In this document: in pieces, positions 6,501 to 64,000 of the stretch
Layout: every line of letters begins with the position of its first letter
Numbering within the stretch: position 1 is the stretch's first letter
DNA from: Malacoraja senta
Taxonomy: Eukaryota
NCBI GenBank assembly: GCA_038087875.1
Contig: CM075980.1
Span: forward strand, 26,846,001-26,910,000
Length of the DNA stretch: 64,000 bases
Direction of reading: 5' to 3'
The notes under the pieces: generated by a model
What the model was told of the DNA's origin: nothing
Seen by the model: only the letters and a program-made list of their open reading frames with translations
Database searches by the model: none
Program-made: the position numbers and the translations under genes

Positions 6501-7588
6501 TGGGAGTCCTCCGGGTGCTCCGGTTTCCTCCCGCATCCCAAAGACGTGCGAATTTGTAGGTTTACCGGCACCCTGTAAATTGCCCCGAGAGTGTAGGGAG
6601 TGGATACGAAAGTGGGATGACATAGCACTAGTATGAACAGGTGATCGATGGTCGGCATGGACTCGGTGGGCCGAAGAAAGGTCTCGACCCGAAACGTCAT
6701 CTGGTAGACAAAAAATGCTGGAGAAACTCAGCGGGTGCAGCAGCATCTATGAAGCGAAGGAAAATATTCCCTTTCTCCAGAAATGCTACCTGACCCGCTG
6801 GGTTACTCCAGCATTTTGTGTCTATCCTCAGTGGGCCGAAGGGCCTGTTTTCCTGCTGTATCTTTCAATCAATTCAATCAGGCAAACAAAAGTAGGAGCT
6901 TCTGGCAACTTAAGAGTGCACATTTCTCAAGCTATCTCAGTGAAGTGGGAGGAAATAGTAACATTATAGTGTTAGGGGAATAAAACAGTGCTGGTATTCT
7001 TCTTTGGTTGGTGTGTGGGCTGGTGTGGATGTGTGTGAGTGAGTGTGTATGTGTCTGGGTATGTCTGGGTGTGTCTGGATGTGTCTGTGTGTGTGGGTGT
7101 GAGTGAGTGTGTGTGGACGAGTGTGTGGGTGAGNNNNNNNNNNNNNNNNNNNNNNNNNNNNNNNNNNNNNNNNNNNNNNNNNNNNNNNNNNNNNNNNNNN
7201 NNNNNNNNNNNNNNNNNNNNNNNNNNNNNNNNNNNNNNNNNNNNNNNNNNNNNNNNNNNNNNNNNNNNNNNNNNNNNNGTGAGTGTGTGTGTGGGCGAGT
7301 GTGTGGGGGTGAGTGTGTGAGTGTGTGTGCATGTGAGTGTGGGTGTGTGTGGGTGGGGAGTGTATGGATGGGAGTGTGTGTGGGTGAGTGGGTGTGTGTG
7401 AGTGGGTGTGTAGGCAAGTGTATGTGAGTGTGTGGGTGAGTGTGTGTGGGCGAGTGTGTGTGTTAGTGTATGTGGGTATGGGGGTGAGTGTGTGTGTGTT
7501 GGAGTGTGGGTGTGCGTGGGTGTGTATTTGTGGGTGTGGGAGTGTGTCAGCATGTTGGGAGTGTGTGTGTGTGTGTGTTGGTGTGTAT

Positions 7589-7633
<45 letters not shown>

Positions 7634-10600
7634 TGTGTGGGTGTGTAAGGTGTGTGTGTGGATGAGTAGGTGTGTGNNNNNNNNNNNNNNNNNNNNNNNN
7701 NNNNNNNNNNNNNNNNNNNNNNNNNNNNNNNNNNNNNNNNNNNNNNNNNNNNNNNNNNNNNNNNNNNNNNNNNNNNNNNNNNNNNNNNNNNNNNNNNNNN
7801 NNNNNNNNNNNNNNNNNNNNNNNNNNNNNTACGGAGCAGACCCCATCATCTCTGACTCGTCCAAGCGCCCTCCCAAAGGGCGCATGCGCCTGGGACTTCG
7901 GAAGAAAGCGTGCCGCCTCGCACCCAGAGCGCTCAACTGCTTCATCCTCCGCTCCTTAGATCTTCTGTTCTGAAACCAGACCTGGCAAAACAATGGCCCG
8001 TGCTTTAGTGGAAATACAGGAAATAAATCACACCTACCCACGCGAATACTGAACCCCCGGCCCAAAGAAACCGCGTTATATCTGTTGATGTAACTAGTCC
8101 CCCCCCCCCCCCCCTTGTAATGAAGATATTGCAACCTTAATATGGAATGGTCAAAATGTGCGACGTGTTTTCCTTAAGCAATAATGCCTTAATACTTTGA
8201 GGGTCGTAGTAACATCGTACCCGTAGCATCGTTGGACAGGCCGGGTAGATTGACGTTAAAGGGGGAAATGGGTGTGATTAGGGACAATGTAGGGCCGCGT
8301 TGAGTGTACATGTTTAGGGTAGGACAAAGCAGCTGGCTGGTTGCACGGATGTGGTCCTGCCAGGAAACTCTAGTAGGGAAGACCCGTCGTGTGCCCACAC
8401 TCTCACGGCCGTGCCCGTACACGCCACGCCTTTCTCCATGCAATTCAAAGTTAAACACGTATTCATGAAATAGCAGCGGTCCGCTGTCTATAATCATTGG
8501 CGTCGCTTCGAAATATCTGAGCCTCAATTTAATACAAAAGTAATATAATATATATCTGCGCGCACACATAAAAGATGAATGCAAAATATACAATTTTCCA
8601 CCGCATCCTTTCTTGATTTAGAGCACGAGCTCATCAAAATTAACTGGGAGTGGTGTATGGATGAAGAGAATCTGAGTTTATAGAGGCAAGTGGTACCTGA
8701 ATAACCCGCATGTTGAGGCCTGTTTCCTGAGCAAGCTGCTCCCGTATGTGTCGCGTCGGCTTCGGGGTGGCGGCGAAAGCGGCTTTCAATGTTTCTAACT
8801 GTTTGGCTTTAATTGTGGTGCGCGGGCCCCTCCTCTTGGTGCCGGTGCTCTGCTCCTCATTCTCGTTATTCTGCGTCTCTTTGTCTGACGAGGTTGAGTT
8901 GTCCGTTTCTTTTGTATCGTCTATACTCTGATCCTGGATATCAGGCGATAAGCTCCGGTCTGTACACGAAGATACTGCAAGACAAAACCGGCTTTTTTTG
9001 TTATCAACCCGACCGAGGAAGGATTCAGTGAAAACCGTTGACAAGATTACAGCATTAAACCATTGAAAATTACTCGCCGGTTCGCACGAGAAGGGAAATT
9101 GTGTCAAATACAGAAAATACGAAGTAATGATTCAAATCATTCGCCAAATTTAAAACATGCTTCTAATAGAAAATGCACCCTTACAATTTTCCGAATCGAG
9201 TTCTGGTTTTCTAGTTTCATGCCATAAACCCTTTAAATCTCCCATTCAATCTTAATGGTATGTTATTCTCATTTATTTTTTATATAATCCAGTTAAACAT
9301 TTTCAGTAATAACAGAATCCCCGAATACAGCCTAAAATGTTTAAAATATGTAATATTTGTAAAATGCAGTGGGCTGATTTAAATTACATTAAAACCAAGG
9401 AGATAATTCCGAAGAGTGACAATTTTAAGGTCATAAATCATCTCAAAATCTTCTAGTGTATTGACGTCCAGAAATCAAACGCGCGGGATGTGGCCAAAGA
9501 GTTTGAAGAAATGAGGACGATTGTATGAAGGGTTTTTTCCAGCACAGATTCAAGAAGGAGGGGGGAAAGGGGGAGATACTTTAATACGTCTTGAATTAGC
9601 GACATCCCATAAGGAAGAAACACAACGACAACGACAACAACAAAAAAACAATTCCCGCCCACCACAAGCACTAACAATTGGCTTTATTTAACAGCCGCGC
9701 CGTCTTCGGGCCTTACCTGAATTTAAGTTGGTGTCTTTAAGACTGCTAGTGCTCATATAATCTTCTTTGCACACAAATTTGTTTTCGTCGATGATATATA
9801 GTTCCTCGCCAGTCGACAGTTGTTTGTTACAAACCATACAAGTAAAACAGTTGAGATGAAATACTTTATTTCTTGCTTTTCTTACGAGGTCACTTGGAGA
9901 AATCCCTTGATAACATCCCGCACATTTCGTACCAAACCGCCTGTGAACAGAAAACGGGGGACATGTAAAGATATACCACCTCTAGAGTCCAATAAGCCTT
10001 TACCACCTCATTGCGATATGTGTGCAATTAGGACAGTCACGAGGCCCTTATATAATTATAAATAGTCATCTGAGTCTGATTGACCAGGTTTGCTCCTTTC
10101 GCAAGACGCTAATTCCATTTCGGGCGGTATGTGTCATGAAGAATGTTCGCGTCTACATTTAAATTAAATCCACACTCACTTGTGTTGGTCCATGATTGCA
10201 ATGGAAGCATCTTACAGTTTTAAGATTACAAAATATGTAAGGTGGAAATTTGAATATATGTTAATATTGTGAATAATTAATTAGAGTGGAAAATGATAGC
10301 AATCCATCAGTGTAAACAGACCCAGAAGTTCTAACAAAAAATAGTTGGAAAATTAAGGCAAAAATGTTACCCTTGCGAGTATTAGATTTCATTAAAAAAC
10401 GCTGTATTGTAAGGGAGATGCATATACTCACGGTATCTCATATGAAATGAGAGGGAGAAAAATACTTCTGAACATTTTCCTCATTACTTAATTTAAGTTT
10501 AAGATTCTGTTGGGATAACTAGCATTTTAACAGGGAATGTCTCTGGGTCGGAACATTGCTGAAGATCCCGGGACAGGAGCTCGGTTCGAGGCCAACATCA

Positions 10601-27668: not shown

Positions 27669-27869
27669 GTGTTGGAAGGAACTGCAGATGCTGGTTTACA
27701 CCGAAGATAGACACAAAATGCTGGAGTAACTCAGCGGGACAGGCAGCATCTCTGGAGTGAAGGAATGGGTCTTCAGTCTGAAGAAGGGTCTCGACCCGTA
27801 ACGTCACCCATTCCTTCTCTCCAAAGATGCTGCCTGTCCCGCTGAGGTACTCCAGCATTTTTGTGTCTT
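27669..27869. mobile_element. Penelope-terminus hairpin insert
   Basis: Inverted arms around ctgaagaagggtctcgacccgtaacgtc; decayed ~16-bp duplication at 27653-27668 and 27870-27885. Confidence 0.85.
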
Positions 27870-28403
27870 CCTTAATTATGTTTCTTTCTGATTTTGCTGA
27901 AACAACATTGGGAGTGGTGGAATAATGCCACAAGCCGTATGTTATGTTTGAGTAAAGGGGATACAACACAAGAAGGATCCTGACCTGAAACACTGCCTGC
28001 CCAACCCCCACCCAATCCTCACCTCCAGATGCTGCCTGGCATGCTGAGTTCTTCCAGCACTTTGTGTTTTGATCAAAATTTATGTTCAAGTTCCATTCAT
28101 TAATCTAAACAATATAACATTACCGAGAGATTATCGTGGAATATATTGCACATCAAGATTAGTATGCACATCATATAATGCAATATCTGTGCATTATTCT
28201 GCGACACTGGTTGTTTACTATCACTCCAATCATATCTGTGATTAATGTGCACTCTGAATCTTCTCAGCTGCTTTGATCAATGCTGATCGTGGATTCCACG
28301 TGGAAAGTTTTTACAAATCATCAATATGTACCTCAGGATAACGTAATTGCTGTGCCAACTAAGTTTGCAATTAGTAGAGACAAGATACTGGCTAATACAC
28401 AAT

Positions 28404-28490
28404 AAGACACAAATTGCTGGAGTAACTCAGCGGGTCAGGCAGCATCTCTGGAGAACATGGATAGGTGTTCTGGACCATTGTTCAGACTGA
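28404..28490 (-). mobile_element. Penelope-terminus insert
   Basis: agacacaaattgctggagtaactcagcgggtcaggcagcatctctggag..ttcagactga. Confidence 0.75.
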
Positions 28491-30739: not shown

Positions 30740-31505
30740 CATCAAGCAGAATTTGCAAAGCAGAGCAACCTGGTATGTTGCATTAGGTACTCTTGCTGTG
30801 GCCTCCTCTATTTTAGTGAGACCACGCACAAACTAGGTGACCATTGTGCCGAGCACCTGCGCTCTGAGCACCATAGCAACCTGGAGTTCCCAGTTTCTGG
30901 TTGTTTCAATTCCCTTTGCCATTCCCACACTGACTTGACTGTCCTTGGCCTCCTCTACTGACAGGGTGAGGTCAAATGCAAACTAAAAGCACAGCGTCTC
31001 ATATTCCACCTCAGTTGTCTCCAACCCCATGGCATAACATTGAATTTTCTCATTTCAGTTACCTGCTCCCTTCTATCCATTCAGACGCTCCTTCATATGC
31101 CCTTCTTTCCTACAACTCCTCGTACCCTCACTATGCTTCTTTCCCACCCACTGCCCCCGTCCACAACCCACATGCTCCTCCCATTGAGTCCTCTACCCCA
31201 CTCTTTCCATCCGCCCACTTCTATGTTTGGATCCACACTCCACCTGTTCACATCAGATTCCATCATCTGCAGCTACTGGTTACCTCCACCTCCAAGTCCC
31301 AGGCTCTGTTGTTTTTTCCGTCTTTCTCTCCCCCACTTTACTTCATCCACCAATCCTCCCCTCTTCACCTGGATTTACCTACCACATGCCAGTTCTTGCC
31401 CCACCACTCTTTCAGAACAGAGAAAGGGTCTTGACTTGAAATATCAACTGTCCATATCCCTCCACAGATGCTGCCAAACATGCTGAGATCCCCCAGCAGT
31501 TAATT
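30740..31505 (+). mobile_element. Penelope-like retroelement 3' part: decayed GIY-YIG endonuclease, CT-rich UTR and hammerhead-type terminus
   Basis: SNLVCCIRYSCCGLLYFSETTHKLGDHCAEHLRS..PVSGCFNSLCHSHTDLTVLGLL..KLKAQRLIFHL..LQPHG resembles the PLE GIY-YIG motif (LYIGETKRRLGDRFAEH). The terminus agggtcttgacttgaaatatc..ccacagatgctgcc..gctgag matches the short elements. Confidence 0.85.
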
Positions 31506-31631
31506 TTTTTTAATCCACCAATTTTAGGTTCATAAACAAATGAAATGTTGTTGTTTATGCTGAGAGATTTTCTATCAGGAAGTTATAATGTTAGGATCTC
31601 CTTTCTCCTCTCACTAATATGTCCAGCATTG

Positions 31632-31940
31632 CAGGTTAATTGGCCTCTGTAAAATTGCCACTAGGGTGCAGGGAGTAGATGGGAAACTGGGATAACACAG
31701 AACTAATGTGAAGATAGACACAAAATGCTGGAGTTACCCAGCAGGACCCGAAACATCACACATTCCTTCTCTCCAGAGATGCTGCCTGTCCCGCTGAGTT
31801 ACTCCAGCATTTTGTGTCCATCTTTGGTTTAAACCAGCATCTGCAGTTCCTTCCTACATAGAACTTATGTGAATGGGTGATTGATGGTTGGCGTGGACTC
31901 AGTGGGCCAAGGGACCCGTTTCCGTGTTGTATCTTTTAAT
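31632..31940 (+). mobile_element. HE1-like SINE, 5'-truncated and interrupted
   Basis: ggttaattggcctctgtaaa..ggactcagtgggccaaggg..tttccgtgttgtatct. Confidence 0.8.
31711..31858. mobile_element. Penelope-terminus hairpin insert inside an HE1 SINE
   Basis: 18-bp duplication (2 mismatches) at 31695-31712 and 31856-31873. Confidence 0.85.
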
Positions 31941-32281
31941 AAAGACTGATCATCAGATCTGCAGATTCTGATTGTTGTCAGTTTCTCACTCCACAGAAAG
32001 TGCCATCAGAATCCTCGAAGACTCTCAGCTAGACCCTATAATCTGGAACCATTAGCTGATGGACACATTAGCTGATGGGATGTTAATTGATAGGGTTAAA
32101 AATAATGATAAGTAAGTGGGATCAATTGAGTACCTAAAGTAAATGATACTTCACTCTCTCTGGAATTAGACTGCAAAATGGGTAATTTCATATGATTGTA
32201 AAAAATACTTTTTGCAGGGATTTAATATCACTTGACTTTGCCTCACTTTGGCAGAGTGTCAGATTTCCAAGTTATATTGGC

Positions 32282-32457
32282 GTAACTCAGTGTGTCAAGT
32301 AGAATGTTTGGAGAAAAGGAATAGGTGACATTTCCGATCTTGACCCAAAACATCACCTATTTCTTTCTTCCAGAGATGCTGCTTCACCCGCTGAGTTACT
32401 CCAGCATTTTGTGTCTATCTTCGGTGTAAACCAGCATCTGCAGCTCCTTCCTACACA
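32282..32457. mobile_element. Penelope-terminus hairpin insert
   Basis: Inverted arms centred on the decayed core; full tail ..ccttcctacac. Confidence 0.8.
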
Positions 32458-32619
32458 TAAATATTTCAAGACTTGTATTTCTGGTAATATTGATGCAAAT
32501 TTACCTGAGATATCATCCAAAGGCACCTGCTTGTTGACACTTTATTCACATACAATATTAAGGTATTCAGATATTAAGGTGCATGAATCTATGTAACTGG
32601 CAATATTACTTGGAATGTA

Positions 32620-32704
32620 GGGTCTCGACCCGAAATGTCACCCTTTTCTTCTCTCTGGAGATGCTCCCTGTCCTGCTGAGTTATTATAGCATTTTGTGTC
32701 TATC
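32620..32704 (+). mobile_element. Penelope-terminus insert
   Basis: gggtctcgacccgaaatgtcacc..ttttgtgtctatc. Confidence 0.8.
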
Positions 32705-33505
32705 AACATTTTTGGGCAGGTTTTCAATTTACTATTGAGTATAATAACATTTTGTTTGAGAACAGAAATACAAATCACCCAGTGTTTGGCCGAAACACAA
32801 TGTCAGCTTGAGCTTGGTTGGCAGTCTAATCATACCCCCCTTTATTTAATTTAGTATCATCTATGATCAAGTAAAGAAACAAGACATAGCTATCTATCAT
32901 AGAACTGAGAAAGCTCATGATTACAAGTTTTCCTGTTTAATATGCATGCTTATCATTATGCTTGAGGGTGTATTTTCTGAATTGTATGACCTACCATAGT
33001 TTTGTTACAAGAATTAGAAATTCCAATTTTAATTTGTGGTTTATATGGATGCTTCATTATCTTTTGCTGAATCATTTCTGAATATCTTCAGTTTAATGCA
33101 ATTTTCTATTGTCTACAAGGGATCTATTCAGACATTGATTTGGTGCTGACTTGTGCTTTGGTTTATTTTATTCTAAATTTTGTATGCAAATAATGTGTAC
33201 TTTTTATTCGATGTTGGTTTAAATGAATCCAAGCACTGTCGTGGCAGTCAGCTGAGTTTCGAATCAAATCGAGTCAGGTTTTGCATGATCTAACCTACTG
33301 CCAGGGTTTGGGTCTCACCATGTTTCTGTGGCCACAGTGATTTTTTACACGGGTGTGGGAATGATCAGCCTGAGACTCTCCCTCGTGAACAGATTGATCG
33401 ATAAGTTGCAACTGGGCCTCACACAGAGGATCCTGAGATTGTCCCCAAAATGCCATGATAGTCATTTTTAACTTCACCTCTATCAAAGCCCTGTGCCTGG
33501 TTGAG

Positions 33506-35244: not shown

Positions 35245-37407
35245 TCCAATTCAGTTCCTACTGTGCAGACATTGATATCAGGGACAAGCTGACTCACACA
35301 TGGAAGCTGATCGGTAGTTGCCTGCAAAATTACTGGCTGAAAATATAAATCAGCCAATTATATTATTTGCAGAAGTAAATTTAAGGCTAATGTAATCAGA
35401 TCACATTATCAGCTTTGGTTAAAAAAATATTGAATCTAACTTTCAAGTATTCAATATATCAAGGGATAGGGTTCAATCATGTAATTTGCAATTTTTATTG
35501 CCATTTTTATAAATAAATTAAAACCGGGGTTATGTATCGGCAAAACTGGGTCGGTCAATAGTTAATCTGAGAATGGTTTCTTGAGTTCTCCACCTGGATT
35601 ATCAACCCATATACATCGCATTTATTACAATCCAAATATAGGGAGTTCCCATAAATATCCTTTTGAAATTCTTGTTTGAGCTAAAGATTTCCAATATCTA
35701 GCACTCAGTGTGCCTCGGTATTGAAGGTTAAGTCTGTACTGTGTGTACTGAGACTGTGTAACATTCAGGGAATGCTTTATGCCATGCACAAATGGGTTTC
35801 CCAATTCCCACATTGCAAGAACAATTGTTCCTTAAAGGTACTTCATCACCTTAAAGGCACTGCATAAATGCAAGCTTTTCCTTTCTTGATAATCGGTTTC
35901 ACTAAGTGTGTTCACTGGAATGTTTTTGACCAATAACAATACATATTACTAAATACAGAAAATTGGTAGGCAACATTATTTTGAAAACTAATCGAAAGTG
36001 ATGTGCAAAAAGTAATTTAAATTTATTCGTGATCCCCCTCCCCCACCCTCGGATCAAACCACGTAGCCAAGGCAAAATGATATCTTCTTTGGCAAAAAAC
36101 ATCAGGTACTGATATATTTTCCCCAAGGAAAGATTAATCCTCAAAAACTCAAACTGAACTCAGTGTGCTAAGAATTCTAAATGAAACTAGTTCTCTATAC
36201 TTTACTTTAATAGCGTAATGTCATGGGTTTCTTACATTTCAACTTTCATGCCTCCCTCATTTCCACACCACAGTTAGTTGGAATTGCTTCTGTCTTTTCT
36301 GTTCATTCTCTTTATGAATCCATGCTTCAAGTGGCAAATATTGTTCCTTCATAGCTCTGGGCAGAATACCAATTTGCAGCCGAAACTCTACAATTGTTGG
36401 GAATTTAATCTTTTAGTCTTTATTTTGAAAGTAAATTATTCTAAGCTATATCTAATAGATTGTACACAATAATACTATAATTTTTGAGATGCGAGTGGTA
36501 TAAATATGTAGCTCAAAATAATAGTCTATGAATGATCACAATGGGTTGATGAAGCTTAATAATACCGTACAAGTTTTTAAATGACAATTCACTCTCTAAA
36601 ATAAATTTCAATTGCGCCGTAATTTTATGTTAATTTGAAGATGCTACTGTGCTGCCTTATATGCTGAAATGAAGCTAAAATTGGTGAATTTCATGAATCT
36701 CTGGACAGCGACATATTAAAACATTTGCCCATGTGCAAAATAAATTACAGAAATCGGGTGACAGAGGCATAAAATGACAGTTGGCATAATGGATCCACAA
36801 AATTTACACAGAATGGGAGTACAATGAATCTTGAAGCACATTCAATTGACAGGGTAATTACTTACACCCAGGACTGTCTTTTACTGTTCAGTGAATACTC
36901 TGTTGTTTTGGCAATAGTATGAGAACCAACACATCCAAGGCTCATTTTTTATGAATACACTCTGCAAATAGAAGCATTGTGTGCCTTCAATTGATGTCTG
37001 TGCAGCATAACATACAGTACTTCCTGAGATTTAAAAAAAAATTTGGGTACATGTACATTTAAAACGAAACCATGTTTTAATGAAACATAAATCTGCATGA
37101 AAGCATCCAAGCCTGTGCAATTTGTGTGACGAAGTTTAAAGGAAATCAAACTGACATTGATGGAAATTAGAAAGGGAAATAATATCACAAGTTTGTGAAT
37201 CCGGTATTGTCATGTTATTGAATTATTGTTGCTTACTTGTGCTGATATGAAAAGTTTGCTGTGGCGAATTCATGAATTTAAAGTGGGCAAATAATGAGGG
37301 CAAAATCCAATGGGTATAATTCACAAATCTGGAACTTGAAGACTCAGAATGGTTGGTGGATTTGCACAACTGAGAATGAAGTAAAAAATATTGTTTCTTT
37401 GGTAGAA

Positions 37408-41640: not shown

Positions 41641-42209
41641 AGAGACATTTTTTAACAAATTCAAATGAAGAAAGTCATTCAGTCAATTTGATCCCAACTT
41701 TTAACAAAACCTAAAAAGGGTTGGTCTGTTGCTATGGCAAAATCCAAATGGTGCAGCATCTTTGGATCTGCCCATTCTGAAGATCATATCCTATGCAGTG
41801 CAAGATTCTGCTGGTGGGTGACTGGAAAGTGTCAAAATGCTTTTGCCACTGGAGGGAATTATGACTTTGGTGAATGGACACAAAAGAAGATGACTTTGGA
41901 ATATGACCGAGAATTCCATAGCCTTCGTTTATTGTTAGATCACCCTATTTGAACATGTTAAGTCAAGAGCCAACTATCACTCAATGTCACTTTTTATCTG
42001 TATCCTTTCATTTAGGCAGTTACCATTCCACTTCTCCATTTTACCAGCTTGTCACTTGCTAACACTTGCGATCAGCTGACCTTTCTAGTAATGGAATTTC
42101 ATGCGAGATACTTTAAGTCCAAGGTACACCTCAGAACAAGGATGTTCACTTTAATCCCATCAAAGGAGTGAAACTATAATAGCACGTTTATCCCCTTTAA
42201 TCAAAGATC

Positions 42210-42420
42210 GAGCAACTGGAGTGGATTAAGCACAATCTGTGGAGGCTAATGGATAGCCAACGTTTCCATTCGAGACCCTGCATCTCAACAGACCATCCTG
42301 ATTGTTGATCCTGAACGTTAATTATCACTTTGCATCCACAGATGCTGCGTGACCCACTGAGTTCTTCCAGCAGCTTATTTCTTGCTCCTGATCCCTTCAC
42401 CTGCAGTTCCTTGTGTCTCC
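42210..42420. mobile_element. Old, decayed Penelope-terminus hairpin
   Basis: aacgtttccattcgagaccc..ccacagatgctgcgtgacccactgagttcttccagc..ctgcagttccttgtgtctc. Confidence 0.65.
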
Positions 42421-44282: not shown

Positions 44283-44379
44283 AATCAATCCCTTATCCTT
44301 CCACTAGTTCAAGCCTCTCCACTGAAAGGAAACACGATCTCTGAATCAGTCCTCCAAAGAACTACGTTTGGAGAAGGAC

Positions 44380-44461
44380 ATAGACACGAAATGCTGGAGT
44401 GCATCTCTGGAGAGAAGGAATCGGTGATGTTTTGGGTCGAGACCCTTCTTCAGACCCTTCA
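44380..44461 (-). mobile_element. Penelope-terminus insert
   Basis: Perfect 12-bp TSD tttggagaagga at 44367-44378 and 44462-44473. Confidence 0.85.
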
Positions 44462-45056
44462 TTTGGAGAAGGAGGATTATCTGAGCATATCTGGCCATAC
44501 GTGAAATCCTTTAATTTATTGTCTGATATTTTCATGGCATTATAGGAATGGTTCTGTGGCAATATTTAGGATGGGCTCTCTACCTTGAAAATGGGTGGGA
44601 GTGGTTTGGGTTATAAAGGGGCAGAGGATTTATTAGATGGAGATGGAAGGTGTGATGTAGAAGGCGTGCATATCATAGATTAATGCTAAAAGCAGGCACA
44701 CAATGGGTCACTGGGAAGCTGTGATAAATTGCAAACTATTCCTCAAGATATTTCAGCGCATACTCAACTTATGTTTAAAAAAAAGTGTAGGCTATGGCAA
44801 AAGAGTTTACTTAAGGTGTTACAGATGCACACATTTTCTTAACTTTAATTAAGTAGATATAAAGAGCAAATACCATGCAAGTCATATTGCAATGGAGATA
44901 TGGTACTTAGTTTAGTTTGGTTTAGAGATACAACATGGAAACAGGCCCTTCGGCTTACCAGGTTCATGCCGACCAGCGATCCCTGTACACTCGCACTATC
45001 CTGCACATTAGGGACAATTTACATTCTTTACCGAAGCCCAATAACCTACAAACCCA

Positions 45057-45256
45057 AGGTAGACAAAAATGCTGGAGAAACTCAGCAGGTGAGGCAGCAT
45101 CTAGGGAGCGAAGGAAATAGGCAAAGAACTGAAGAAGGGTTTCGACCCGAAACGTTGCCTATTTCCTTCGCTCCATAGATGCTGCCTCACCCGCTTAGTT
45201 TCTCCAGCATTTTTGTCTACCTTCGATTTTCCAGCATCTGCACTTCCTTCTTAAAC
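45057..45256. mobile_element. Penelope-terminus hairpin insert (subfamily B) inside an HE1 SINE
   Basis: Perfect 14-bp TSD aacctacaaaccca at 45043-45056 and 45257-45270. Confidence 0.9.
45129..45156 (+). ncRNA. Minimal hammerhead ribozyme core (Penelope type)
   Basis: CTGAAGA-A-GGGT(TTCG)ACCC-GAAAC-GTT: complete catalytic core, stem II with a UUCG loop; stem I partner truncated. Confidence 0.7.
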
Positions 45257-45655
45257 AACCTACAAACCCATATGTCTTTGGAGTGTGGGAGTAAACTGGA
45301 GTACCCGGGGAAAACCCACGCTGTCACGTAATGTTTTATTATCCAACTTACTTTAAGCCATTTGATCGGATTCTATACTCTTTTCCCTCTTTAGATTTTT
45401 GTTCACATTCAATAAATCTCCAATCACAAAATAAAGTCAGGACAAAACTAAAGGAAAATGTTAATTGGGCTCACAATTTACACTCAATATTTAGCAGTAA
45501 ATATGAATTAGTCAAAAGTAAATTTTGTCTTTTCATGATCAATTTGATTGAACGATGGAGAGAGACATGAAAAGGTGGACTCATCACGCAGTATCGAGGC
45601 ACACGGATTCTACAACTAAATATTCCGAAATACAAAGAATAGATTTAACAAAAAA

Positions 45656-45745
45656 AGACACAAAGTGTTGGAGTAACATAGAGGGCCTGGTAGCATTTCT
45701 GGACAACATGGATAAGTAACGTTTCGGGTTGGGACTCTTCGCGAG
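45656..45745 (-). mobile_element. Penelope-terminus insert (decayed)
   Basis: agacacaaagtgttggagtaac..aacgtttcgggttgggactcttc. Confidence 0.7.
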
Positions 45746-45760
45746 ATTGATCTGTTTTTT

Positions 45761-48240: not shown

Positions 48241-48554
48241 GGTAACCAGGAGCACTCCATCGCTCAATCATCCACTCTCCATAGATGCTCCCTGATCTGC
48301 CGAGCATTTCACCAGCAGCATCTGCAATCTGTATCACTAAGTTCCAACATTATTTTCCTCTCACTATTTACGCTCCTTCTAAAAGATCAGTTGAAAGTAA
48401 TAATCACTCATCACCTCCCGTCAGATGGCCTCAACCGCATTTGTGTCACCTGGTTTAACGTTATCCCTCTATTCTTTTTGTTCTACTCACCCTTCCCCCT
48501 CTTGAACTTTTCACCAGTTTTTCTCTCCACAGATGCTGCTTGATTGATTATCTA

Positions 48555-50083: not shown

Positions 50084-50162
50084 TAGCATAAAGTAAAGTG
50101 CTCCTTTTAATTTATTGGGTGAATTTTTATTGATTTAATATAGGGGTAAATATTCATCCTTG

Positions 50163-52735: not shown

Positions 52736-52818
52736 GAGAGATGCAGCCTCACCCGCTGAGTTTCTCCAGCATTTTAGTCTACCTTCGATTTTCCAGCATC
52801 TGCAGTTCCTTCTTAAAT
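52736..52818 (+). mobile_element. Penelope-terminus insert (subfamily B, no core)
   Basis: gatgcagcctcacccgctgagtttctccagc..ccagcatctgcagttccttcttaaa. Confidence 0.8.
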
Positions 52819-53976: not shown

Positions 53977-54710
53977 GGGTGGCATGGTGGCGCAGTGGTA
54001 GAGTTGCTGCCTAAAACCCCTGTCTCACGGTGCGAGCTGACCCACGAGGTACCCCGAACTTAAAACAAATTTAACCCATGGTAATCACATACGATTAATG
54101 TAGCGGGAACGTCGGAACTCGTGGACGCAACTTAGCGACTCGTGGCGCTAACGGCAGGTACCCGTGAAACTTGTTAACTCTTGAAAAAGTTCAAACATGT
54201 TTAAAGTTTTCCACGAGTAAAATGTACTCTTGAGGTTAAAAATGGAAACATTTAAACACGTTGTAAGAACGTAGTGGCCCGTGCGTTTACTTTAGTGACT
54301 CGTGAGTCTACCGTGGGAACTCTTTAACTCAGCGGGCAGGCAGCACCTCTGGAGAGAAGGAATGGGTGATGGGATGACATTTCCAAATTGGGGTGGGGGG
54401 GGAGGAGGGAGGAGGGGTGGAGGAGAGAGGGTGGAGAGTGGAGGGAGAGGAGGGGGAGACAGATGGGGTGTCTTCATTCACTGGCTGCGGGTGCCTGTCA
54501 CTGAAACAGGCAGGTGAGATTTCACATCCACCTTGTGTGTGTGTGTCTCTCTCTCCCTCCCTCCCTCTCACACAGGCTGAGAGACTGCCTCTGTGAGTGT
54601 ACGTCTCTTTCTCCCCCTTGTGTGTAGGATAGTGTTAGAGTGCGGGGATCGCTGGTCGGTGCGCACTCGGTGGGCAGAAGGGCCCGTTTCAGCGCTGTAT
54701 CGCTAAACAA
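53977..54710 (+). mobile_element. Composite: HE1 SINE head, truncated Harbinger-like MITE (54013-54320), Penelope terminus (54326-54383), G-rich tract, SINE tail
   Basis: Head ggtggcgcagtggtagagttgctgcc; aacccctgtctcac resembles the TIR at 40758; tail ggactcggtggg-like..gctgtatcgctaaac. Confidence 0.6.
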
Positions 54711-55487: not shown

Positions 55488-55725
55488 AAAGATCGATCAG
55501 CAGGGCCGACAGATTCTGATTGTTGAGTCAGTTCCTCCCTCCGCAGAAGGTGCCACCAGAATCCTCAAAGAATCTCAGCTGGACCCCATAGACTGGACAG
55601 AGATGCACACATTAGCTGAAGGGAGGTTAATTAATGGGGCTGGCCTGTATGGCACTTGTGACTGCCTTCCTGAGAAATGCTGATTTTAAACAGATTATGT
55701 TGTTGTGAGACTCCATTAGAAGGTT

Positions 55726-55875
55726 TAAGAACGAACTGCAGATGCTGGAAAAATCAAAGATAGACAAAAATGCTGGAGGAACTCAGCGGGTGAGGCAGCA
55801 TCTATGGAGAGAAGGAATAGGCAACGTTTCGGGTCAAGACCCTTCGGGCCTCGACCCGAAACGTCGCCTATTCCT
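55726..55875. mobile_element. Penelope-terminus hairpin insert
   Basis: Perfect 15-bp TSD ctccattagaaggtt at 55711-55725 and 55876-55890. Confidence 0.9.
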
Positions 55876-57051
55876 CTCCATTAGAAGGTTGATTTCTTTG
55901 CACAATTAGCAATGCCGTGGTTCCTTATCTGGCAAATACAGTCTGCAGCAGCATTAAGAATGCAACACACCTGCATTCCTCGGGAACGACAGGCCCACGT
56001 GCCTTCTCTTTAATTAGCTACAATTTCAGTAATAACAAGCTCAACTTGCTTAATGCAAGTCTTCAGAAAATAAGCCATTTCCCCATTCAAGCAATTTGGC
56101 AGCATGTGCCAAACAGCTTTGAATATGTGTGTCATTCCATAGTGCTGAGATTACTCATCATTAACTTTGAAATAACAGCAGCTCTCAGAGCTAATGCACA
56201 GGATCAAGCATGCAAGTAAAATCACGCCTTGATACTGATGTTTAGGTTGTTTTAAAACTAAAATGTCCACATGACCAGTAATAAACATTTGCTTATACTC
56301 TGTCTCAACCCTCTAATATTATTTTTTTAAACAGTAAGGAAAAAAATTGTTTTCATTTTTTCTGACGTTGGTCACAAACCTGAGATTGTAAAGAAATCAG
56401 TGAAAACTTACATCTTGAAAGTATCATTGACATCAATTTGCTTTAAAAAAAAGATGTTTTGGAATGAAATCTGTCACCAGTTTGTTGCTATTCAGACATA
56501 CAAAGAAGGGACTATATTACACTGGAAAGATTACCCTGCACAATAGTCTGGGGTGAACCTAGAATCAGTGGAGTAACTACTTTAGAAATACTGAGAGCTA
56601 AATGACTGAAAAACTATGAACTGTTCCAATGCAGTCTGTCTGAGCACTCTGCGGTACAACTCCACAATTTTCTTCATTATGACTTGTATTTTATTACTAC
56701 AAGTCTTTTAAATCGCCTGAAAACCGTAAGTAAAAACTTACCTTCAGGTTTTTTACTTACCGGTTTGGAGGAGCTCTGCTCGCTCCAAACATCGGCACTT
56801 CGCTATGCGTCTGACGATATGACGCGTGTGCGGCTGGACGGGCTCTTCTTCACGTAGTCACTCACGTGACTCCGAAGTAAAATTGAACATTGATAGTAGC
56901 AGTAGTAAATTTTGGCTTAAAGTGCCTTGTGTCACTTTGAAATGGATGAGAAAAATGCCGTATTAAAGCACACCATTTTCTATCACAACCTCTGTGAAAA
57001 GAAGCTGGGTTGTCAAAGGTGAGCATCGCAGGAAAGTACTAGATTCCTCCT

Positions 57052-57380
57052 GTGTAGGAAGGAATTGCAGATGCCGGTTTAAACCAAAGATAGACACAAA
57101 ATGCTCTTCCAGTCCTTTATAAGATTAAGCCAGTTATCAAAACACAAAGTTAACAAACTCCATTTAATTCATTTGTTTTAATGTTCAAAGCCATAAGGAG
57201 GAATCTAATATTAGACACAAAATGCTGGAGTAACTCAGCAGGACGGCACCATTTCAGGAGAGAAGGAAAGGGTGACTTTTCGGGTCGAGACCCTTCTCAG
57301 CACGAAATGTCACCCGTTCTTTCTCTCCAGAGATGCTATGCCTGTCCTGCTGAGTTACTCCAGCATTTTGTGTCTAATAT
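57052..57380. mobile_element. Penelope-terminus hairpin insert with secondary inverted capture of flank
   Basis: 12-bp TSD tagattcctcct at 57040-57051 and 57381-57392. Confidence 0.85.
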
Positions 57381-57485
57381 TAGATTCCTCCTTATGGCTT
57401 TGAACATTAAAACAAATGAATTAAATGGAGTTTGTTAACTTTGTGTTTTGATAACTGGCTTAATCTTATAAAGGACTGGAAGAGC
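57103..57485. repeat. Perfect 142-bp inverted repeat (57103-57244 / 57344-57485)
   Basis: Arms compared base by base; no mismatch found. Confidence 0.95.
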
Positions 57486-58147: not shown

Positions 58148-58282
58148 GTGCAGGAAGGAACTGCAGATGCTGGTTTACAAAGACGATAGACACAAACAGC
58201 TGGAGTAACTCCACGGGTCAGGCAGCATCTGTGGCGAGAAGGAATAGGTGACGTTTTGGGTCGGAAACCTTCTTCAGACCCC
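58148..58282 (-). mobile_element. Penelope-terminus insert
   Basis: Minus strand ggggtCTGAAGAaggtttccgacccaaaacGTCacct ... full tail. Confidence 0.85.
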
Positions 58283-58825
58283 TTGTGGATTTTCAATTCA
58301 ATTCAATGATACTTTATTGTCACATGTACCCAGGTACAGTGAAATGCTTTGTTTTGTATACAACCCGGTAAAAAACATGTAGAAGACCTCAGCTAAGCAG
58401 TACACAAGTGTTGCCATATTTTGGTGCTGACAATTGAATTGAATTGCACAGCCAGTGATGGGGCTGTTCGCTGGCTGCCTACGTCAGCTGGGTGCTAACC
58501 TCATGTGGCTACCACCACTTAAAGCCAATCTATGCTTCTTGAAGATACAATGTGGCTGTAGATGCTCGTGGCAGGTACTGAACTTAGTCGGGCCTGGGAG
58601 GCATTGAAGATTGGCATTTGTGCTCCAGGATTTTCCAATGTTGCTTGCAAGGAATTGTTACACTCTCCAGACCAACTCTGCGTAGATGGTAAGGGGCAGG
58701 TGGTTATGGTAGACAATGCCAAAGATTCAGCTCCAAAGACCTGGGACCAGTTCTTATAAAACGTGCAATGATCTCATGTGAGTCATTAATGCCTGTGATT
58801 GTATCATCAAATATCATATGGATTA

Positions 58826-59143: not shown

Positions 59144-59670
59144 CTAAATATTCCATCCTAAGTTTCACCATGAGCTAATGCTCTAGATTGAGGCATGCAA
59201 CAAAACTCTTCATTCATCAGAACGCACACCAAACATTCTAGTTGACTTCACTCTCACACACTTGCCCCTGCTAATGGCCACACACACACACACACACACA
59301 CACACAACTCATAGCTTGCAGATGCTACTAGTGGGAATCTATTCAACTCAGGTTGTCTTCATCCCTGTACCAAGGTCACGCCAGCCTCTGTCACTATGTA
59401 GTAGAAATAAAGCCTGGAGAGCAGTAGGAATCACAGAGGGGATGAGAAGAAGGTCCTCCACCTGAAACGTCACCCATCCATGTCGTCCACGTTGAGGTTT
59501 ATTCAGGTTTATTCAGATTTATTATTCTCACGTGTACTGAGGTACAGTAAAAAGTGTGATCAGATATACCATTCGAGATTCGAGATTCGAGATTCGAGAT
59601 TCGAGATTCGAGATTCCTTTATTTGTCATGCATGACAAATTTGTCATACCATGCATAGAAACAATCAGTT

Positions 59671-61490
59671 CCTTCCGGTTGCATCATGAAGTGGTGAAGG
59701 TGCAGCATTGAACTCAGCTCCTGCTAAAATCGTGTAAAAAGACGTTTTTAAAGTCGGGACCGATTTAAAAACACCCACCGGGGCTGCTTGATGTTGTGGG
59801 AGTGACGAGACCCTCAGATGAGTAAAGGAAAACATCAACGGGGACCCAAGAAATCGACTATCAGAATCTTGCGGGAGGAAGACTTGGCAGCCCTCCAAAC
59901 AACAACTGAAAGCTCAGACGAAGAAGGTGATCCTCAACTAGCAGTATCTGAAATGGCTACAAAAGGAGATACAAAAGGGATAGAAAAGGAGAAAGAGATG
60001 AAACATAGAAACATAGAAATTAGGTGCAGGAGTAGGCCATTCGGCCCTTCGAGCCTGCACCGCCATTCAATATGATCATGGCTGATCATCCAACTCAGTA
60101 TCCCGTACCTGCCTTCTCTCCATACCCTCTGATCCCTTTAGCCACAAGGGCCACATCTAACTCCCTCTTAAATATAGCCAATGAACTGGCCTCGACTACC
60201 CTCTGTGGCAGAGAGTTCCAGAGATTCACCACTCTGTGTGAAAAAAAGTTCTTCTCATCTCGGTTTTAAAGGGATTTCCCCCCTTATCCTTAAGCTGTGA
60301 CCCCTTGTCCTGGACTTCCCCAACATCGGGAGCAATCTTCCTGCATCTAGCCTGTCCAACCCCTTAAGAATTTTGTAAGTTTCTATAAGATCCCCTCTCA
60401 ATCTCCTAAATTCTAGAGAGTATAAACCAAGTCTATCCAGTCTTTCTTCATAAGACAGTCCTGACATCCCAGAAATCAGTCTGGTGAACCTTCTCTGCAC
60501 TCCCTCTATGGCAATAATGTCCTTCCTCAGATTTGGAGACCAAAACTGTACGCAATACTCCAGGTGTTGTCTCACCAAGACCCTGTACAACTGCAGTAGA
60601 ACCTCCCTGCTCCTATACTCAAATCCTTTTGCTATGAAAGCTAACATACCATTCGCTTTCTTCACTGCCTGCTGCACCTGCATGCCTACTTTCAATGACT
60701 GGTGTACCATGACACCCAGGTCTCGCTGCATCTCCCCTTTTCCTAGTCGGCCACCATTTAGATAATAGTCTGCTTTCCTGTTTTTGCCACCAAAATGGAT
60801 AACCTCACATTTATCCACATTATACTGCATCTGCCAAACATTTTCCCACTCACCCAGCCTATCCAAGTCACATTGCAGTCTCCTAGCATCCTCCTCACAG
60901 CTAACACTGCCCCCCCCAGCTTAGTGTCATCTGCAAACTTGGAGATATTGCCTTCAATTCCCTCATCCAGATCATTAATATATATTGTAAACAGCTGGGG
61001 TCCCAGCACTGAGCCTTGCGGTACCCCACTAGTCACTGCCTGCCATTGTGAAAAGGACCCGTTTACTCCTACTCTTTGCTTCCTGTTTGCCAGCCAGTTT
61101 TCTATCCACATCAATACTGAACCCCCAATGCCATGTGCTTTAAGTTTATATACTAATCTCTTATGTGGGACCTTGTCGAAAGCCTTCTGGAAGTCCAGAT
61201 ACACCACATCCACTGGTTCTCCCCTATCCACGCTACTAGTTACATCCTTGAAAAATTCTATAAGATTCGTCAGACATGATTTACCTTTCGTAAATCCATG
61301 CTGACTTTGTCCAATGATTTCACCACTTTTCAAATGTGCTGCTATGAAGCAGTGGGAACAAACGGTAAGAGCTAATCTTACTAAAGATCTTACCACAGAT
61401 CTCATTAAGGAATTCTCCAAAATGCTTACTAGCATGAATAATAAACTGGAGAAGAAACAATCAGTTCAAACTCGTGCAATAGGTAGATAT
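59671..61490 (+). mobile_element. Probable L1-type 5' UTR and ORF1 N-terminus, split by the CR1
   Basis: Starts cttccggttg..; ORFs 59818 and 61314 join in frame (..EKEMK|[14 protein letters not shown]..) when the CR1 is removed; coiled-coil-like. Confidence 0.45.
60003..61343 (-). mobile_element. CR1/HER1 LINE, 5'-truncated, young, RT with a frameshift
   Basis: [44 protein letters not shown]; frameshift near the poly-C at ~60910; ATGAA duplicated at 59998-60002 and 61344-61348. Confidence 0.96.
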
Positions 61491-61561
61491 AGGGGGAAGA
61501 GGCATACTGCAGAATATTGTTCTCAGCATTGTGGCACATCAGTTCCAGACACAAAGTGTAG

Positions 61562-61835
61562 TTGAGTTTAGTTCAATTTATTGTCATGTGGACCGAGGTA
61601 CAGTGAAAAGCTTTTGTTGTGTGCTATCCAGTCAGTGGAAAGACAATATATGATAACAATTGAGCCATCCACAGTGTACCGATACATGATAAAAGGAATA
61701 ACGTGAATAACGTTTAATGCAAGATAAAGTCCAGTAAAGTCTGATGAAAGATAGTTGGCGGGAATGCAATGAGGTAGATAGTAGCTCAGGACTGCTCTCT
61801 AGTTGTTAGTAGGATGGTTCCGTTGCCTGACAATA
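61562..61835 (-). mobile_element. Rex1/Babar-like 3' UTR (related short ends at 21667-21955 +, 34310-34512 +, 58296-58430 -, 59495-59560 -, 62416-62850 -, 63941-64000 -)
   Basis: Shared terminus tttattgtca(c/t)(g/a)tg..aggtacagtgaaa with simple-repeat tails. Confidence 0.7.
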
Positions 61836-63035
61836 GTTTCTAGAGATGCTGCCTGACCTGCTGAGTTGCCCCAGCAGTTTGTATCTATCTGGCACTGTGT
61901 TACAGTCCATAGAGATGCTACATGCAAATGCTCATGTTTGGAAACCAAGCTCAAGACATCATTGACTTATTCAACAACGTGCGCAAGCGAATGGGCCTTA
62001 TGTTACACATCAAGAAGACATTGGTCCTCTATCCACCTTCACAGCATTGTCTCTGGACAACAAAGATGCATGAAAACATTACAATGTAAAACATGGCCCA
62101 GTAACATATTTTGGGAGCCTCAAATTGGAAGAAGTAGATATAAATTATGAAATTCTCCATCACCAGCACGGCCTGAGGTGATCAATACCTCAAAGCTGCC
62201 ACAGAGCTCACATTCTACTGGCCACCAGTGATCCCCAGCTTTGTTTCTGAGACGTAGGCTACAAACAGCAGTCACATTGGAGAGCTACCAGCAGCATGCT
62301 CCAAGTTCACTGGCAGAAAAATCAGTATCCTCTCCCAGGCTAACATCCCCAGTACCGAGGCTCGGATTGTATTGCATTGGCTCCAATCGTCAGACCACAT
62401 CACAGCAAGAGGGAAGAGTCAAGAGATTTTTTATTGCCATATGTCACGAAATAAAATAATGAAATTCTTACTTGCAGCAGCTCAACAGTCATCTAAACAT
62501 AGTACTTTGTAAAACCCATATTAGTTAAATACATATACGTATGCATATACACACAAACGCATGCANNNNNNNNNNNNNNNNNNNNNNNNNNNNNNNNNNN
62601 NNNNNNNNNNNNNNNNNNNNNNNNNNNNNNNNNNNNNNNNNNNNNNNNNNNNNNNNNNNNNNNNNNNNNNNNNNNNNNNNNNNNNNNNNNNNNNNNNNNN
62701 NNNNNNNNNNNNNNNNNNNNNNNNNNNNNNNNNNNNNNNNNNNNNNNNNNNNNNNNNNNNNNNNNNNNNGTATGTCAAAGTCAAGAATAATGTCCCAGGT
62801 CTATGCACTTTGGAACCGATTTAGAGGTTGTAGAGTTGAGTAGCCTGTTACAAGAAGCACTCCTGATATGCACTCTAGCCAAGCTCTATCGCAGCAGGAC
62901 AGTACCAGAAGGACAGAGGAAATGATGCAAGGATGTTCCAAAGCTTCTTTGAAAAGGTGTAACATGGCTTGTGGGAATCGCATGCCCGTGACTCCTCTAG
63001 ATGGAGAAGGAGCATTCAATATGGCATTGAATCAA

Positions 63036-63132
63036 AGGTACACAAAAATGCTGGAGAAACTCAGCGGGTGCAGCAGCATCTATGGAGCTAAGGAAATAGG
63101 CGACGTTTCGGTCCGAAACCCTTCTTCAGACC
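63036..63132 (-). mobile_element. Penelope-terminus insert inside the RTE remnant
   Basis: Perfect 14-bp TSD tggcattgaatcaa at 63022-63035 and 63133-63146. Confidence 0.9.
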
Positions 63133-63133
63133 T
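63097..63133 (-). ncRNA. Minimal hammerhead ribozyme core with stem I
   Basis: AGGT-CTGAAGA-A-GGGTTTCGGACC-GAAAC-GTC-GCCT; stem I AGGT/GCCT; one mismatch in stem II. Confidence 0.65.
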
Positions 63134-64000
63134 GGCATTGAATCAATCAGGTTATACGTAACCAGAAAGAAGCAGAGACAGTGCATCATCACCAAAGCAG
63201 CTCCGGCCTCAGTCTGTCACTCATGTTGGCTTCTTCAGTCACTTTAGAACCCCTAGAGGTGGAATCGAACAAATCATGCTTGAGTGAGAGTTTGCCCAAG
63301 AAAAATTGTGGCCATTGGGAGAATGGCCAGGGCAATCCTAGGGTGGATCCATTTGGTTTGCCCAGCATTAGGTGTGCACGGTTGTACCATGCCGGTTTCC
63401 TTCTGTTCCAGCAGATATTCATTCACTCACACACCACAAGCACATCAACTGTTTCCTGCATTGAGATGGCAACCAAAGGCTCTGCACTGTCTCATCAGTG
63501 TTTTTCACACCGAGTGTTCCAGCCTCTACATTAAATAGCCAGTAAATTGATGAATAATTCACCAGAACTCCATTCACTGGGCACAATCCTCCTCCACAGC
63601 CACTCATGAGCTGAATGTGGTCGCTGGTTTAGTGATCAGGCAGCACTGTGCAACATGAGTCATTTGGGCCAGTTTGTTGCTTGGAAACACCTTGCAGAGC
63701 CCTGATTACCGCTCCTGCAGGTTTCTCCTCAACCCCGCACGCACCTCCCCATCCCCCAGCTCAGCGGCAGCCTTTTCTCCTGCAAGATTGTGGTGGCCAT
63801 TGAGAGTTCTTTTAAACATCAACTCATTTGCAGTGGTCATCACATCAAAGAAGTGGCAGCTGCGAGCTCTTGCAAGAGAGATCCCCAACAGGAATTGCTG
63901 TAAACCCATTTTAATCTCAAATCTGTGGGCTAAATTTCAATTAGTTTAGTTTATTATTGTCACGTGTACTGAGGTACAGTGAAAAGCTTTTGTTGCATGC

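Follow-up and report, generated by a model that had tools for sequence, protein, structure and literature searches.

The window analysed here, 64,000 nucleotides of Malacoraja senta DNA, is strewn with short inserts, some of them fold-back and MITE-like, made of a unit that begins, where complete, with what resembles a hammerhead ribozyme core. What kind of element leaves such inserts? Using 11 copies to build an nhmmer profile for searching the window, we find 40 matches to a unit of ~139 nt at 26 loci, which total 3,350 bp (5.3% of the non-N window), or about one locus per 2.4 kb. The initial annotation had put the density at roughly one insert per 3 kb and counted more than 20 inserts with a shared ~130-nt unit, both of which the search upholds while adding one locus (537-630) beyond the noted range 6677-63146. 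Insert sizes span about 50-330 bp, and three subfamilies (A, B and C) are distinguishable in an alignment of the units, in line with the minimum of three proposed earlier and with tail endings close to the three quoted there. Exactly ten loci are head-to-head pairs by profile search, as against an earlier estimate of about ten hairpins: 6677-6830, 21409-21670, 27671-27877, 31713-31858, 32278-32456, 35041-35244, 42208-42414, 45057-45256, 55726-55875 and 57052-57380. The arms are 84-92% alike in five of these hairpins and of unequal age or subfamily in the other five, which may represent adjacent or nested independent insertions rather than single events. Among the profile matches in the window there are no head-to-tail pairs, partial tandems, pseudo-LTRs (pLTRs) or permuted copies of the unit, the lack of partial tandems being expected if every copy is shorter than one unit. 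Assembly gaps are irrelevant to the family, since no unit touches or spans one (the closest lie at 73, 257 and 301 bp). The features are as follows.

537-630, minus strand: single long (tailed) unit that covers positions 38-133 of the profile (E 6e-12) and has its 5' end close to where the cut is predicted; candidate 7-bp TSD.
6666-6841, plus strand: compound insert 6677-6830, a subfamily-A unit that an inverted subfamily-B piece splits near the cut site; TSD GTGGGCCGAAG at 6666-6676 and 6831-6841.
21409-21670, unstranded: two inverted old arms (identity 0.67) with a ~90-bp spacer containing a tail fragment, 21515-21546.
22512-22650, plus strand: single full-length tailed unit of the older subfamily C; exact core at 22519-22546, but A at position 10.1.
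25268-25362, minus strand: single 5'-truncated short-form unit (profile match).
27671-27877, unstranded: head-to-head pair (arm identity 0.92); left arm tailed, from unit position 38; right arm short form, whole motif present with GAAA changed to GUAA.
27970-28070, plus strand: separate older diverged unit (profile match).
28383-28488, minus strand: single old unit with an internal deletion within the motif.
31417-31517, plus strand: single old unit, subfamily C-like (profile match).
31696-31873, unstranded: head-to-head insert 31713-31858, left arm short, right arm tailed; TSD at 31696-31712 and 31857-31873, 13-17 bp with 1-2 mismatches.
32278-32456, unstranded: head-to-head pair, axis through the stem-II palindrome; arm identity 0.72, the left arm far more decayed than the tailed right.
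32617-32712, plus strand: single 5'-truncated short-form unit (profile match).
35028-35257, unstranded: head-to-head insert 35041-35244, left arm tailed, right short, axis just 5' of stem II; arm identity 0.85; TSD TCCAATTCAGTTC.
42208-42414, unstranded: old head-to-head pair of subfamily C, tail ending in ttccttgtgtctcc; arm identity 0.67.
44367-44473, minus strand: single short-form unit at 44379-44461 with its start 8 nt ahead of CUGAAGA; 18-nt internal deletion; 12-bp TSD.
45043-45270, unstranded: head-to-head insert 45057-45256 of subfamily B, nested in another repeat; left arm short, right tailed; exact core pattern at 45129-45156; TSD AACCTACAAACCCA.
45647-45741, minus strand: single old short-form unit (profile match).
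48275-48321, plus strand: weak fragment (E 4e-4).
48514-48543, plus strand: weak fragment, doubtful (E 4e-3).
52737-52815, plus strand: 5'-truncated tailed unit of subfamily B; assembly gap 73 bp away.
54325-54371, minus strand: fragment, unit positions 34-81 (profile match).
55711-55890, unstranded: insert 55726-55875, a full tailed minus-strand unit whose 5' end carries positions 18-55 again as a 35-nt inverted copy; TSD CTCCATTAGAAGGTT; shared with related species, the orthologous contig running into the tail.
57040-57392, unstranded: head-to-head insert 57052-57380; 12-bp TSD; orthologous contigs run into both ends; a perfect inverted duplication of 142 nt (57103-57244 and 57344-57485) disrupts the insert and takes in flanking DNA.
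58150-58284, minus strand: best full-length tailed unit (137 bits), GAAA changed to AAAA; present in related species.
59444-59489, plus strand: motif-bearing fragment, positions 10-55, broken off beside the 3' end of a CR1-type LINE.
61834-61890, plus strand: 5'-truncated short-form unit (profile match).
63022-63146, minus strand: single short-form unit 63036-63132 of subfamily B, starting 3 nt before CUGAAGA; 14-bp TSD; the most intact motif, with an exact core and a possible helix I.

Exact direct repeats flank seven loci, at lengths of 11, 12, 12, 13, 14, 14 and 15 bp, compared with a mean of 0.095 and a maximum of 1 in 200 trials with 26 random loci of the same size, and two further loci have short TSD candidates of 7-8 bp. 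The initial annotation had counted at least eight clear TSDs of 12-18 bp; the number stands, with seven exact repeats and an eighth carrying 1-2 mismatches, while the length range shifts to ~8-15(17) bp overall. The TSDs are not AT-rich, and the single-arm copies 44379-44461 and 63036-63132 have TSDs of their own. Empty sites are reciprocal for two inserts: a host-repeat paralog at 31874-31960 is without the insert 6677-6830, and the copy at 6560-6676 is without the insert 31713-31858. RNA reads and contigs of host-repeat paralogs jump from 45025 to 45257 and therefore supply empty sites for the insert 45057-45256. Three inserts (55711-55890, 57040-57392 and 58150-58284) occupy orthologous sites in four related species and are thus old.

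The outer ends of the inserts fall at two places. In the window, 18 units have 3' ends at unit positions ~96-116 and 13 at 130 or beyond, ~35 nt apart; where a TSD bounds them, short ends lie mostly at ~103 and long ends at 136-139. The same two ends recur as loose ends at 45221/2 and 45256/7 in thousands of paralogous reads. Five hairpins combine one short with one tailed end, and none of the ten loci is two-tailed. We considered whether head-to-head inserts must have one short and one long end and rejected such a rule, as the combination is found in 5 of 7 only and does not depart significantly from independent choice.

The unit starts with CUGAAGA-A-GGGU..ACCC-GAAAC-GUC, and the CUGANGA and GAAA boxes stand at the right spacing in the consensus of all three subfamilies. 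The pattern CTGANGA-N13-GAAACGTH has three exact and three one-mismatch matches in the window versus 0.04 expected, and the core pattern is enriched 75-150 times over shuffles. An extra unpaired A lies between A9 and G10.1 in every copy spanning the position, and at the G10.1-C11.1 pair (pair 18-29) 13 of 22 copies have G-C and 4 have G-U. Stem III is absent, the ACGU around 15.2-16.2 is palindromic, and position 17 is an H, the consensus and the intact copies alike reading GAAAC-GUC or GUU. The core reported earlier, CUGANGA..GAAA..NUH, thus appears sound, with a consensus that fits the published stem-III-less minimal hammerheads (min-HHR) of Penelope-like elements (PLEs). By analogy with these, the motif is of the stem-III-less hammerhead type, in which an active site would be formable only as a dimer, and its sequence makes it a putative ribozyme.

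Few copies could now act as one. The catalytic core is intact in only 3 of 40 units, decay having struck mostly at CpG sites. Helix I reaches 3-4 bp at most, in few copies (AGGU/GCCU at 63036-63132, GGGU/ACCU at 58150-58284); its cells are paired in 54%, no better than shuffles, and most copies are without native upstream sequence. Covariation scores for helices I and II in 22 copies lie within those of shuffles, and no helix II pair has changed on both sides, the power of such a comparison being low because the copies are decayed relics of few masters. Rfam hammerhead models, which contain the stem III that is absent from this motif, gave no match, either across the window at gathering score or with the best copy (63036-63132) at E<=10; exact-pattern scans of viral and metagenome contig collections likewise returned no matches. 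The RNA signatures proposed earlier do not appear in one polyA RNA-seq run, where ends do not pile up at the predicted cut (45156/45157) and no clear circular-RNA junctions occur; a few read joints that go back can be explained by rearranged paralogs. Since most motifs are mutated, the very large number of ribozyme motifs suggested earlier would consist mostly of dead relics.

We consider that the inserts were most probably left behind when a PLE enzyme, in which an RT is joined to a GIY-YIG nuclease, carried out target-primed reverse transcription. The family, its boundaries, TSDs, empty sites, two 3' ends, motif match and the age of three inserts are observed, and the min-HHR match, variable TSDs, heavy 5' truncation, inverted partners and paired 3' ends support the Penelope-type derivation that the initial annotation had favored. 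Work on the anole element Poseidon serves as the model for the presumed enzyme and for priming from both strands. Such an enzyme would make a staggered cut, giving TSDs of ~8-15 bp, and copying would begin at one of two internal RNA start sites ~35 nt apart, giving short-form or tailed 3' ends. After no more than ~100-135 nt, copying would nearly always have halted, either inside the minimal hammerhead that lies upstream of the start sites or just short of it. Either both cut strands would prime or a new copy would land on an old one, leaving two 5'-truncated copies head to head in a MITE-like arrangement. In the parent RNA, the hammerhead presumably aids the processing of multimeric transcripts. 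Snap-back self-priming as the sole route to hairpins is disfavored, as the second arm ends at the discrete short site that single copies also use, and arms are sometimes unlike in subfamily or age. The window holds no RT/GIY-YIG gene among its listed ORFs of at least 110 aa, ten of which were scanned in Pfam, and its only RT is CR1-like. Homeodomain matches occur in two ORFs, 8640-9107 above and 7547-8134 below the Pfam cut-off.

The 5' ends bear on what template was copied. Units begin within the first 29 unit positions in 28 of 40 cases, none extends upstream past the profile, and 10 of 40 have their first base at unit positions 3-9, which puts it 1-7 nt ahead of CUGANGA. Loose read ends place the 5' edge of the family at 45129, upstream of which 1,615 paralogous RNA reads diverge to flank-like conservation (agreement 0.4), as in the 3' flanks. 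We rejected 5' ends at unit positions 32-40 as marks of in vivo cleavage, with only 4-6 units there and the unit 537-630, which is bounded by a candidate TSD, starting a few nt upstream of the cut. So sharp an edge favors a second possibility, which we regard as rather unlikely though by no means negligible, that the ~135-nt unit stands on its own as a non-autonomous retroposon, SINE- or retrozyme-like, with its own short source RNA and mobilized by PLE enzymes; this differs from truncated copying of full-length PLE RNA only in the template. A summed k-mer depth on the units of roughly 1e5 times single-copy in four species points the same way, as does the proposal that animal retrozymes are non-autonomous PLE derivatives, whereas the window has no tandem arrays or permuted copies, promoter evidence is lacking, and the polyA run gave no evidence of circular RNA.

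It is less probable still that the hammerhead shapes integration at the DNA level, besides or instead of cutting RNA, with a dedicated ~135-nt template being amplified. Copying from the two adjacent start sites may then stop in or just before the motif, and two same-sense cDNAs from both cut strands may be joined via the self-complementary stem-II sequence. If this were true, skates would have a ~135-nt template RNA at 1e5-1e6 copies, and the sharp 5' edge would be part of the design of an ultra-short PLE parasite of a new type.

LINE-type target-primed reverse transcription also yields TSDs of 8-15 bp and 5' inversions, a CR1-like RT lies inside the window, and the motif stems show no covariation beyond shuffles, all of which would suit a SINE or 3'-end fragment moved by a CR1/L2-type LINE, with an incidental motif and hairpins made by twin priming. 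We hold this to be very improbable, since the 3' end has neither poly(A) nor a microsatellite, discrete 3' ends at two sites with 35 nt between them mark PLEs and not LINEs, the motif fits four PLE min-HHR features that lay outside the original search descriptor, and the CR1 3' ends from 59490 and 58290 onward are unrelated in sequence. Ten inserts do have the fold-back form of true MITEs, that is, deletion derivatives of DNA transposons moved by cut-and-paste, but this reading is contradicted by TSDs varying from ~8 to 15 bp and by the TSD-bearing single-arm copies 44379-44461 and 63036-63132, and with an axis anywhere from unit position 4 to 59 and unequal arms that end at two different sites and sometimes belong to different subfamilies it is hardly credible, the MITE look being superficial.

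With copying by a PLE enzyme as the preferred reading, the family is real but ordinary, an element kind already known: the literature has covered the motif class, its PLE link and its mass occurrence in other animals since 2014, and the skate family leaves existing knowledge of hammerheads unchanged. By rough k-mer depth, its copy number reaches 1e5 or higher in five or more related species. Its share of ~5% of the window and its high copy number mean that it matters for repeat masking, assembly and annotation of skate genomes, and its hairpins and palindromes are difficult to assemble. The copies form a very large natural sample of PLE integration products, with their two start sites, junction structure and presumed both-strand priming, that could be mined as a test of the in vitro model from the anole element.

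Among known systems, MITEs share small size and the fold-back form, whereas the skate inserts have no fixed TIRs or TSD length, unequal arms and mobile single arms. Animal non-LTR retrozymes (Cervera & de la Pena 2020, PMC7229834; Li et al. 2026 preprint) are likewise short non-coding hammerhead repeats with variable TSDs and a supposed dependence on PLE enzymes, but they have tandem arrays, canonical type I hammerheads and circular RNAs, in contrast to the minimal hammerhead of the skate unit, found without tandems or evidence of circles. Closer is the min-HHR of PLE terminal repeats (Cervera & de la Pena 2014, PMC4209133), for which cleavage as a dimer is credited to Lunse et al. 2017, as cited in PMC6765202. 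In both, CUGANGA and GAAA boxes occur together with G10.1-C11.1 and a single unpaired nucleotide ahead of stem II; helix I is short (putative in the skate copies) and stem III absent, the palindromic ACGU permitting a shared stem III in a dimer. Both are also massively dispersed, most motifs lying singly or on opposite strands, apart from full elements. Unlike schistosome min-HHR families, with a stem II of 6-8 bp, the skate motif has 4 bp and a tetraloop. The skate lineage is not named among the hosts in the cited PLE min-HHR literature; coelacanth and Xenopus have thousands of min-HHRs per genome, and the skate value of ~1 locus per 2.4 kb would be far denser if the window is typical.

PLE inserts are known for 5' truncation, an adjacent inverted 5'-truncated copy and an optional tail of 30-40 bp (Craig et al. 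2021, PMC8557442), the tail being the stretch that separates the two sites at which the RT can start (Frangieh et al. 2024, PMC11167929). The enzyme of the anole PLE both cleaves and extends each of the two strands, and no RNA-end pile-up at the cut site was seen in that study either (PMC11167929). The skate inserts differ in having no ORF and no partial tandems in the window, in their extreme shortness (about 50-330 bp) and in targets that are not AT-rich, whereas anole and Drosophila PLEs prefer AT-rich ones. They agree with PLE inserts in their head-to-head copies with 3' ends outward, variable TSDs and two 3' ends ~35 nt apart, and in a hammerhead ~65-100 nt upstream of the start sites, a distance comparable to the ~85-92 nt of the anole element.

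The shared unit was first recognised by a seed search with the motif of the initial annotation and by inspection of four copies, and a profile from 11 copies gave a unit consensus of 139 positions. A profile search of the window recovers 40 units at 26 loci, covering 3,350 bp (5.3% of the non-N window) at about one locus per 2.4 kb; together with the flanking duplications described below, these counts confirm the repeat family that the initial annotation had observed. Three subfamilies (A, B and C) are distinguishable in the alignment of copies. No unit in the window contacts an assembly gap, the closest lying 73 bp away, and the gaps are without effect on the finding of the family. The unit is laid out as follows.

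Layout of the unit (positions along the profile consensus)
5' start: GGU or AGU, a few nt
Hammerhead stretch: CUGAAGA, an extra A, GGGU-CUCG-ACCC, GAAAC and GUC; predicted cut after position 37
Middle: about 65 nt after the predicted cut, containing two well-conserved boxes (..AGATGCTGCC.. and ..CTCCAGCAT..)
First 3' end (short form): near position 103, ..GTCTAYC
Second 3' end (tailed form): optional, about 35 nt further, positions 136-139, ..CCTTCCTACAC or ..CTTCTTAAAC

The box AGAUGCUG (unit positions 57-64) can pair with CAGCAUUU (87-94), just 5' of the short 3' end, or alternatively with CAGCAUCU (115-122), inside the tail, as exemplified at window positions 45176-45240. These alternative stems adjoin the two presumed start sites of reverse transcription and are better conserved than any other part of the unit; they may be a recognition site of the enzyme.

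Evidence that the units were inserted comes from their flanks. At 7 loci the insert is bounded by exact direct repeats of 11-15 bp, against a chance expectation of 0.095 per set of size-matched random loci (at most one in 200 sets), and an eighth locus has a flanking repeat of 13-17 bp with 1-2 mismatches. The inserts 6677-6830 and 31713-31858 occupy different points in two copies of another repeat, and these host copies are collinear across both insertion points once the insert and one copy of the target-site duplication (TSD) are removed, so that each is the empty site of the other. This host repeat (6560-6925 and 31625-31960) is interspersed, its two copies being 73% alike with one unit insert each. 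At the insert 45057-45256, reads and contigs from host-repeat paralogs jump from about 45025 to 45257. This hairpin lies within a different, highly expressed repeat (44960-45042 and 45257-45330; ..acctacaaaccc..gtctttggagtgtgggag..), which we take to resemble V-SINE/HE1-type SINEs of cartilaginous fish.

Pairs of units in head-to-head orientation, their 3' ends outward, occupy ten loci, a form that the initial annotation had likened to MITEs, the short derivatives of DNA transposons. We reject a MITE identity because the axis of the pairs varies (unit position 4 to 59), the arms are unequal, single-arm copies (44379-44461 and 63036-63132) are flanked by TSDs of their own, TSD length is variable among the inserts, and arms of mixed age or subfamily occur within one locus. 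Between the arms, identity reaches 0.84-0.92 in five loci and only 0.67-0.77 in the other five, where one arm is often much nearer to copies elsewhere, and subfamilies A and B are combined at locus 6677-6830. The hairpin class is thus mixed: by arm comparison, some pairs look to have been born in a single event, while others suggest insertion of a new copy on top of or next to an old one, or the use of two templates. A perfect (100%) 142-nt inverted repeat (57103-57244 / 57344-57485, 99 nt separating the arms) is centred on a hairpin insert, with about 105 nt of flanking unique DNA reverse-copied, whereas identity between the inner hairpin arms is only 88%. Either the hairpin triggered a very recent fold-back duplication here, or the repeat is an assembly artefact.

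The ends of the copies are sharply placed. Among the units of the window, 18 have the short 3' end and 13 the long one; none of the 10 head-to-head loci is two-tailed, and 5 of the 7 informative ones combine one short and one long end, which is no significant departure from independent choice. The same two 3' boundaries recur, as loose ends at 45221/2 and 45257, in paralogous reads of an RNA-seq run and in contigs from three other RNA runs. These sequences also show a 5' boundary at 45129, upstream of which agreement is 0.4 in 1,615 reads, as unconserved as the flanks. The start of 28 of the 40 units falls within the first 29 positions, and no unit reaches beyond the profile on its upstream side, nearly all copies stopping at the hammerhead motif. 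This may be due to a dedicated template RNA that is itself short, or to a strong stop, and the stem-II palindrome is a candidate aid to the joining of two cDNAs.

A fixed-spacing pattern for the hammerhead core has three exact and three one-mismatch matches, against 0.04 expected, and the whole core is kept in just three units (22519, 45129 and 63102). Common changes fall on the motif's three CpG sites, and conservation in its non-CpG columns exceeds that of the remaining unit only slightly (0.90 versus 0.85). Pairing is seen in 81% of cells for helix II and 54% for helix I, with no stem covariation beyond shuffles among the copies in the window, and Rfam hammerhead models do not match the motif. 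In one polyA RNA-seq run, no pile-up of molecule ends is seen across the examined stretch and depth is equal in both read directions; the reads are therefore consistent with passenger transcription.

Four related organisms, each represented by one DNA run, have orthologous single-copy contigs for the locus, with about 4-5% letter differences in the pieces listed. They enter the inserts 55726, 57052/57380 and 58150, and these three inserts are therefore older than the divergence of those species. In all four DNA runs, k-mer depth summed over the units reaches about 1e5 times the single-copy level, a rough pointer to copy number only; locus 31-mers are also present in RNA runs from three further organisms, and scans of viral and metagenome collections returned no unit copies outside the genome. 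At 56632-56880, the orthologous contigs from all four species have about 73 nt in place of about 250 bp; given the very high k-mer depth of part of this stretch, it is probably another repeat whose insertion is lineage-specific.

The window holds no long ORF, and its only reverse transcriptase is that of a CR1-type LINE at 60255-61435 (-) (RVT_1, E 2e-21; typical C-terminal part encoded in the next frame), whose 3' end lies near 59490 with short tandem motifs. A similar CR1 3' end (58290-58370) adjoins the 5' end of a unit at 58284. Elsewhere, ORF pieces at 8640-9107 (-) (homeodomain match, E 1e-11) and 7547-8134 (-) (weak homeodomain match, E 0.004, below the Pfam cut-off) suggest a homeobox gene adjoining two assembly gaps, and GC skew is high at 4001-8000.

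We found no description of such a family for skates or sharks in the literature searched. Insertions of Penelope-like elements (PLEs) show strong 5' truncation and partial tandems, an inverted 5'-truncated copy adjoining the 5' end, and a tail of 30-40 bp, often at a single end (PMC8557442); the unit inserts likewise combine 5' truncation, an inverted partner and an optional tail of about 35 nt. The enzyme of the anole PLE Poseidon cuts and extends both DNA strands, and its reverse transcription begins at two adjacent internal sites, the tail being the stretch in between; its hammerhead requires protein for cutting and is dispensable for insertion, and no RNA-seq ends were seen at the cut site (PMC11167929). 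With the minimal hammerhead that Cervera and de la Pena described for PLEs, the unit shares the two catalytic boxes, an additional nucleotide following A9, the G10.1-C11.1 pair, the absence of stem III and a palindromic ACGU that could form a shared stem III as a dimer. The 5' truncation, inverted partners, two 3' ends and minimal-hammerhead match thus support the Penelope-type origin proposed in the initial annotation, and the family as a skate representative of a known type, namely 5'-truncated Penelope-type insertions with a minimal hammerhead.
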